64,000 nucleotides of DNA from Octopus sinensis (lineage: Eukaryota): NCBI RefSeq assembly GCF_006345805.1, contig NC_043001.1, positions 86,118,001 through 86,182,000 of the forward strand, read 5' to 3'. This document shows, piece after piece, positions 8,638 to 9,079 of the stretch. A program made the translations under genes and the position numbers. Within the stretch, counting starts at the first letter, position 1. Every line of letters begins with the position of its first letter. Below the pieces are notes generated by a model. That model made no database searches, was not told where the DNA came from, and saw nothing but the letters and a program-made list of their open reading frames with translations.

Positions 8638-8947
8638 CACTGTGATCACCGTGACCGACCAGACTATCAGATGTTTTACACATCGCTGGTCACAATGCGC
8701 TTCGCATTGTTTTAGCCTTCAAATGACGCCACTCCGCTGGCTAAGTGAGCAGGCCAACAGAAGAATGAATGAGAGAAAGTTGTGGCGAAAGAGTACAGCA
8801 GGGATCGCCACCACCCACTGCCGGAGCCTCGTGGAGCTTTGGGGGTTTTCGCTCAATAATCACTCACAACGCCCAGTCTGGGAATCGAAACCGCGATCCT
8901 ACAACCGCGAGTCCGCTGCCCTAACCACTGGGCCATTGCGTCTCCAC
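8638..8947 (-). mobile_element. tRNA-derived SINE (OR1-like head) with a distinctive tail, fused downstream of the 5S copy
   Basis: Head GTGGAGACGCAATGGCCCAGTGGTTAGGGCAGCGGACTCGCGG...GGTTTCGATTCCC (A and B boxes); tail ends ...GGTCACGGTGATCACAGTG directly at (TA)n. Confidence 0.85.
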
Positions 8948-8961
8948 TTACAATGTGTGAC

Positions 8962-9079
8962 GCTTACTGCCTCTAGGTTTCCCAAGCGGTCACCCATCTA
9001 AGTACTAACTAGGCTCGACGTTGCTTAACTTCGGTAATCTGACGAGAACCGGTGCTTTCAACGTGATATGGCCGTAAAC
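8962..9079 (-). rRNA. 5S rRNA-derived copy, probably a pseudogene or SINE head rather than a functional gene
   Basis: 118 nt reading GTTTACGGCCATATCACGTTGAAAGCACCGGTTCTCGTCAGATTACCGAAGTTAAGCAACGTCGAGCCTAGTTAGTACTTAGATGGGTGACCGCTTGGGAAACCTAGAGGCAGTAAGC; box A and box C recognisable; 3' end diverged; no oligo-dT terminator; solitary. Confidence 0.9.

Follow-up and report, generated by a model that had tools for sequence, protein, structure and literature searches.

A full-length, decayed copy of 5S rRNA lies 13 nt ahead of a full-length tRNA-derived SINE on the minus strand of the Octopus sinensis stretch analysed here (64 kb, hereafter the window), and both are nested, in the same orientation, inside an older SINE. 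A single reverse-transcribed piece probably brought all three parts, 5S copy, spacer and SINE, into the (TA)n(TG)n microsatellite of that older element. The feature is confirmed as the original prediction had described it apart from two qualifications, one on the word 'tRNA' and one on the missing TTTT, while its nesting in the host microsatellite, which goes beyond that prediction, is the main new result.

Structure of the unit and state of the 5S copy

A single 5S rRNA was the sole Rfam family found above threshold in the 64-kb window. The gathering score of RF00001 is 38, and assignment to the 5S sequence class was defined as a score above this threshold over the full length; the copy at 8961-9079 belongs to the class with 95.8 bits over model positions 1-120, as expected from the earlier claim of a full-length 5S on the minus strand. 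Along the minus strand, the order is an impure (TA)n of ~700 bp, (TG)10, 5S from base 1, 13 nt, the 310-nt SINE, (TA)24-28 and a TG-rich stretch. The unit was said to lie between (TG)n and (TA)n, and it does, with (TG)10 on the upstream side and (TA)24-28 on the downstream side. Its parts and immediate flanks are the following.

9079/9080-9098, read on the minus strand: (TG)10 upstream of the unit, abutting 5S base 1
8961-9079, minus strand: 5S rRNA copy, 119 nt, full-length and decayed (Rfam RF00001)
9017-9031, minus strand: 5S box A-like segment (string search)
9009-9014, minus strand: 5S IE-like segment (string search)
8983-9000, minus strand: 5S box C-like segment (string search)
8948-8960, minus strand: spacer of 13 nt, TCACACATTGTAA, linking the 3' end of the 5S to the 5' end of the SINE
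8638-8947, minus strand: tRNA-derived SINE, full-length, 310 nt, sharing its 5' start with 11 other loci
8725-8947, minus strand: tRNA-derived head and body of the SINE, 80-88% identical to five window copies
8925-8935, minus strand: SINE box A, TGGCCCAGTGG (string search)
8881-8892, minus strand: SINE box B-like segment, GGTTTCGATTCC (string search)
8638-8724, minus strand: subfamily-specific 3' tail, homology with sister tails ending near unit position 355
8581-8637, minus strand: (TA)24-28 run after the tail, belonging to the retroposon as its simple-repeat end, to the target, or to both

Of the 34 pairs in the 5S consensus, the copy keeps 31 in standard form. Pairing is lost at G7.A112 in helix I, which bears out the helix-I substitution reported earlier, and at G66.G109 and C67.A108 in helix V. 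All three internal control segments were recognisable by string search, the box A-like segment being intact; the assignment of their positions also leans on Xenopus numbering. Against the metazoan pattern, transitions are present in both the IE (GCCTAG) and box C (TAGATGGG...GCTTG). The spacer had been given as 14 nt, a length that is obtained when the last 5S base is included and is otherwise 13 nt; it holds no T-run and is composed of neither (TA)n nor (TG)n.

The absence of a Pol III terminator, put forward earlier as a mark of the unit, is real, as no run of four T occurs in the whole 442 nt, but it is not unusual: 110-131 of 1272 same-sized stretches (9-10%) are likewise free of TTTT on a given strand, as are three sister SINE copies. 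The argument built on it is therefore weak, since about one such stretch in ten would satisfy it. The sole informative point in the absent TTTT is that the 5S copy is without the terminator expected of a gene.

This point bears on the possibility that the 5S copy is a gene or orphon at the DNA level, still working or working until recently, and that the SINE, on inserting, displaced its terminator. Such an origin would be in keeping with the high Rfam score, the full length and the intact box A-like segment. On the other hand, pure microsatellite stands against base 1 in place of an upstream gene flank, no T-run follows base 119 (no run of four or more T is met for 873 nt), three consensus pairs are broken, the copy sits inside another SINE and no tandem 5S array is present in the window. 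The terminator, the flanks or array and the intact helices of a functional 5S gene are thus all lacking at 8961-9079, there is no sign of a working 5S gene in this copy, and a displaced gene or orphon is a very improbable source of it.

The SINE part and its relatives

Besides the focal copy, five copies of the SINE head and body are present in the window.

1253-1440, plus strand: sister copy
5378-5552, plus strand: sister copy
13310-13467, minus strand: sister copy
23872-24064, plus strand: sister copy
24666-24855, minus strand: sister copy

Six further copies were retrieved outside the window, from a 20-kb Octopus vulgaris segment (OX597820.1) and from short Logan contigs. All 11 of these other head-bearing loci (five in the window and six fetched) begin with the common start GTGGAGRCGCAATGG, their upstream DNA is unrelated, and a 5S ahead of the SINE head is absent at every one of them. 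Because these 11 loci begin at the same base without 5S, the canonical SINE family is one without 5S and the focal SINE is full length. Target-site duplications of 9-15 bp were found in four of seven sister copies, and the shared 5' end together with these duplications is in keeping with a dispersed, multi-copy element of the tRNA-derived SINE kind (SINE2 type). The density of the SINE is about 1 per 10 kb, with six copies of the focal family in 64 kb. From the consensus of its closest relatives, the focal copy departs by 8.9%, within the 7-14% of those relatives.

The description of the element as tRNA-headed needs qualification. Boxes A and B-like are present, but no tRNA was detected in the head by ARAGORN, nor by the Rfam tRNA model even at E<=10. 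Box A is an exact fit to the consensus TRGCNNAGTGG, and the box B-like segment fits 10 of the 11 positions of its consensus.

In four of five subfamily copies, a TTGT(A/T)-like motif was observed no more than 10 nt ahead of the SINE start, at the following sites.

8940-8955 of the window: TTGT(A/T)-like motif
13468-13480 of the window: TTGT(A/T)-like motif
24858-24870 of the window: TTGT(A/T)-like motif
10310-10320 of L002: TTGT(A/T)-like motif

The motif may represent a target or 5'-junction preference; that TTGT is part of the SINE consensus was ruled out, as the motif falls inside the target duplication in the copy ending at 24855. Related SINEs, 74-79% identical, are also held by Logan contigs L003-L009 (runs SRR11869384-94, one project, 1-2.5 kb), and in L003 a (TG)n stands immediately 5' of the SINE head. 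Neither 5S nor the focal tail was found in the 20 kb of OX597820.1 or in the seven short Logan contigs, all of which contain related SINEs.

The distinctive tail claimed for the focal element is borne out by the end of homology with the sister copies near unit position 355. In the remaining ~85 nt, hairpins are predicted at 8693-8709 and 8657-8691, and the predicted fold of the tail has -39 kcal/mol (z = -1.7). Its last 54 nt recur at 26477-26530 on the plus strand, there too ahead of (TA)n. The focal element is therefore placed in a tail-swapped subfamily ending in, or targeting, (TA)n. At the second site (26434-26600, plus strand), the 5'-truncated 54-nt tail copy has (TA)n on either side, and the ~24 nt ahead of it resemble the reverse complement of the 3' end of the abundant SINE described below. 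Such an arrangement could have arisen as a further junction artefact, or it could point to (TA)n as the target of the subfamily.

Nesting within an older SINE

The sequences on both sides of the unit and its microsatellite flanks belong to the two halves of another, very abundant SINE family, here called Z and X, which are always parted by an internal (TA)n(TG)n of variable length. The parts of the host element and examples of its family in the window are listed below.

9805-9990, minus strand: 5' part of the host SINE (half 'Z') with a tRNA-like head and a body; identity to the 11 other copies in the window is 72-88%
9080-9804, minus strand: host internal microsatellite upstream of the insert, impure (TA)n of ~700 bp and then (TG)10
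8536-8580, minus strand: host remainder, TG-rich microsatellite remnant
8393-8535, minus strand: host 'X' half, with ten other X copies in the window
14202-14608, plus strand: example host-family copy
35845-36217, plus strand: example host-family copy
59619-59941, plus strand: example host-family copy

In eight other host copies, the gap between Z and X measures 14-143 bp and consists of (TA)n(TG)n only, with both halves on one strand, versus 1270 bp at the focal locus. The 5S copy, the spacer and the SINE are the only non-microsatellite DNA between the two halves here, and all of them share the strand of the host SINE. Consequently, given this difference in gap length, the older SINE carries the unit within its internal microsatellite, in the same orientation. 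Sub-threshold Rfam matches at 8560-8650 and 9066-9120 (mir-1277, mir-297, pestivirus 3' UTR and others) are low-complexity artefacts on (TA)n and (TG)n, and miRNA and viral UTR families in 8560-9120 were accordingly rejected.

Evidence for a single insertion

The claim of one retrotransposed unit is backed by the nesting, by the lack of a separate duplication around the SINE, by a spacer that does not derive from the host and by a 5S that starts at +1 without flanks. Taken as one unit, the locus has the make-up of a template-switch chimeric retrocopy, with a full-length small RNA at the 5' side and a retroelement at the 3' side in the same orientation. The 5S part is regarded as RNA-derived because it comprises exactly bases 1-119, abuts microsatellite and has neither gene flank nor terminator. 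Since 5S rRNA is without a LINE-type tail, its retroposition requires a carrier template.

The search for target-site duplications, proposed in the original prediction as a check, had a divided outcome. For the SINE alone, comparison of the 20-30 nt upstream of its head with the DNA past its tail gave a best score of 5-6, the mean of random controls being 6.1, so that no duplication of the SINE alone is seen. The flanks of the whole unit are identical at 40 of 46 positions, but both are TA-to-TG microsatellite, and low complexity alone gives this level of identity. Therefore, a whole-unit duplication is not demonstrable, because both flanks are low-complexity repeats of the same kind.

An improbable alternative is that two independent events took place, in which a 5S retropseudogene was formed and a SINE of the same orientation separately happened to insert 13 bp beyond its 3' end. 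SINE density is high, with six focal-family and 11 host-family copies in 64 kb, the whole unit has no provable duplication, and both copies bearing the focal tail lie in (TA)n, a hint of a microsatellite preference that would concentrate insertions; microsatellites acting as hotspots could thereby raise the chance of adjacency. Two separate hits in the microsatellite are nevertheless disfavoured because the spacer between the parts holds no host microsatellite, and the SINE without a duplication of its own and the 5S rRNA in need of a carrier also argue against them. From the SINE density, the chance that a SINE head lies within 20 bp on the same strand was estimated at ~0.001 per 5S copy under uniform insertion, and at ~1% by our estimate if insertion is confined to this 800-bp microsatellite. 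A single insertion thus accounts better for the spacer-separated arrangement, although 13 nt of filler may be more than a simple template jump would leave, and a direct jump does not explain it; no published junction lengths were found for comparison with it.

Isolated chimera or amplified family

Within the single-insertion reading, the unit could well be a one-off or very low-copy chimera, which is given somewhat less than an even chance overall. A second junction copy was found neither in the 64 kb of the window, with a junction 20-mer and up to 3 mismatches, nor in ~35 kb of related loci. In a metagenome collection, the junction pattern had one match, a bacterial tRNA beside a chance GATGGGTGACCG. 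The junction was also absent from GTDB genomes and IMG/VR, where the SINE-head control was equally absent, and these two collections are hence silent on copy number.

Protein libraries were searched with an antisense frame that spans the junction. A word-indexed search returned one SINE-derived hypothetical protein of O. vulgaris, without 5S, and an exhaustive HMMER search with the frame, which covers the tail, the SINE, the spacer and the 5S end, returned 11 SINE-derived frames, none of which reaches the 5S or covers the distinctive tail. The source genome is therefore barely represented in the protein library. String searches of the literature matched neither the SINE head nor mollusc 5S motifs. 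Three further parts of the original prediction, a composite family, dual promoters in actual use and inflated 5S gene counts, gained no support from any of these tests.

An amplified composite family, whose members would have the 5S, the spacer of 13 nt, the tRNA-derived SINE and the tail in common and would be transcribed throughout from the 5S promoter, is possible though doubtful. All the evidence for a single unit is also evidence for such a family; in addition, no T4 occurs from 5S base 1 to the tail, so that read-through would be possible, and the spacer suits a fixed master sequence better than a fresh template jump. By our own reasoning, an instance met at random is also likelier to come from an abundant class than to be a rare one-off. 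Precedents exist in HaSE3 (PMC3272025), in the AmnSINE1 type (PMC4758252) and in MEG-RL and the scaphopod Ante (PMC10946416, PMC5804259). Against these points stand the single 5S and single junction in 64 kb, the absence of 5S at the 11 other SINE-head loci and the fact that none of the 11 related frames detected in a search of 1.84 billion representative proteins runs on into 5S. Moreover, the intact A and B boxes of the SINE would yield 5S-less transcripts outcompeting the composite, the IE and box C of the focal copy carry transitions, and no cephalopod 5S SINE appears in a 2024 review (PMC10946416). Retroposed 5S promoters are also usually silent, according to the statement of Kapitonov and Jurka as it is cited in PMC3272025. 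It is accordingly rather unlikely that the locus represents a so far uncatalogued SINE family of cephalopods with a dimeric head, that is a complete 5S followed by a complete tRNA-derived module with boxes A and B, which would be read through from the 5S promoter, would constitute a living intermediate of the proposed AmnSINE1-type pathway and would be a source of spurious 5S matches in octopus annotations.

Comparison with known chimeric elements

The mode of origin most likely matches that of template-switch chimeric retrocopies, which makes the unit a known kind of object. Chimeric retrogenes formed by template switching of reverse transcriptase were described by Buzdin et al. 2003, as cited in PMC4758252 and PMC4824008. 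As far as these two citing accounts portray them, they have in common with the focal unit a full-length small Pol III RNA at the 5' side, a retroelement in the same orientation at the 3' side, no terminator between the two and insertion in one piece. The focal unit differs from them by having a full-length SINE as its 3' part, by the 13 nt of filler at its junction and by duplications that are unreadable in a microsatellite target.

In the AmnSINE1 type (Deu-SINE; Nishihara et al. 2006, as summarised in PMC4758252 and PMC4824008), a 5S is likewise fused 5' of a tRNA-derived head. A truncated tRNA part and a Deu central domain characterise AmnSINE1/Deu-SINE, whereas the focal head is complete with boxes A and B. 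The comparison is thus imperfect, and the focal architecture, with 5S before a tRNA-derived SINE, resembles instead the ancestor postulated for the AmnSINE1 type.

MEG-RL, an element of fruit bats, consists of a 5S-derived unit joined to a tRNA-derived SINE. It and Ante of the scaphopod Antalis are 5S-headed SINEs like the focal unit (PMC10946416, PMC5804259), and Ante is evidence of 5S heads within Mollusca (PMC5804259). Both differ from the focal unit in lineage, body and tail, and both are established multi-copy families. HaSE3 of Helicoverpa armigera is, like the focal unit, an invertebrate chimera of 5S and a tRNA-derived SINE, and it shares body and tail with its parent SINE HaSE1 (PMC3272025). 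In HaSE3, however, a 5S stands in place of the tRNA head, and no fewer than 16 copies were recovered (PMC3272025), whereas the focal unit has retained the head and is known from one copy. The taxa listed with 5S SINEs in the sources found are reptiles, insects, fish and mammals (PMC10946416), in addition to the scaphopod (PMC5804259).

Proposed course of events

From the observed anatomy, nesting and lack of a separate SINE duplication, we infer a template switch, a LINE partner and an order of events. A LINE reverse transcriptase would have primed on the SINE RNA via its tail of hairpins plus (TA)n and copied this RNA up to its own 5' end. It would then have switched template, through the 13 filler bases, onto 5S rRNA, which would have been copied to base 1. 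The switch could date from this insertion itself or from an earlier stage, in an ancestral master copy that was later amplified. Decay would have followed, amounting to ~9% in the SINE part and to the three broken helix pairs of the 5S.

A candidate for the LINE partner could be an element at 45116-46353 on the minus strand of the window. Its two adjacent frames of 137 and 175 aa presumably correspond to the C-terminal part of a non-LTR retrotransposon ORF2; no Pfam match was obtained for them, and a 117-aa ORF was not on record. Template switching from a SINE to 5S is the published account of the origin of 5S/tRNA composite SINEs and of chimeric retrogenes (PMC4824008, PMC4758252, PMC3272025).

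Other reading frames of the window

Exon-like reading frames were noted at 56554-56943 and 17180-17494, both on the plus strand. One of them resembles the stretch following a VIT domain; the other consists of a transmembrane segment and then a stop. Word-indexed protein searches and Pfam gave neither homologues nor a family for these two frames. Six window frames which we take to be LINE, mariner and exon remnants showed no significant family in a Pfam scan, and two window reading frames looked up for related contigs were not on record.

Implications

Should the junction prove to be multi-copy, no earlier 5S-containing SINE would, going by the sources found, be on record for cephalopods. The element would moreover count among the rare ones that have kept the 5S and the tRNA promoter modules whole side by side, permitting a direct test of which promoter drives a composite SINE. 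If it is single-copy, the unit would be a neat but ordinary by-product of template switching by reverse transcriptase. In that event, lone Rfam 5S matches in octopus assemblies may be retrocopies within repeats, not to be counted as genes.
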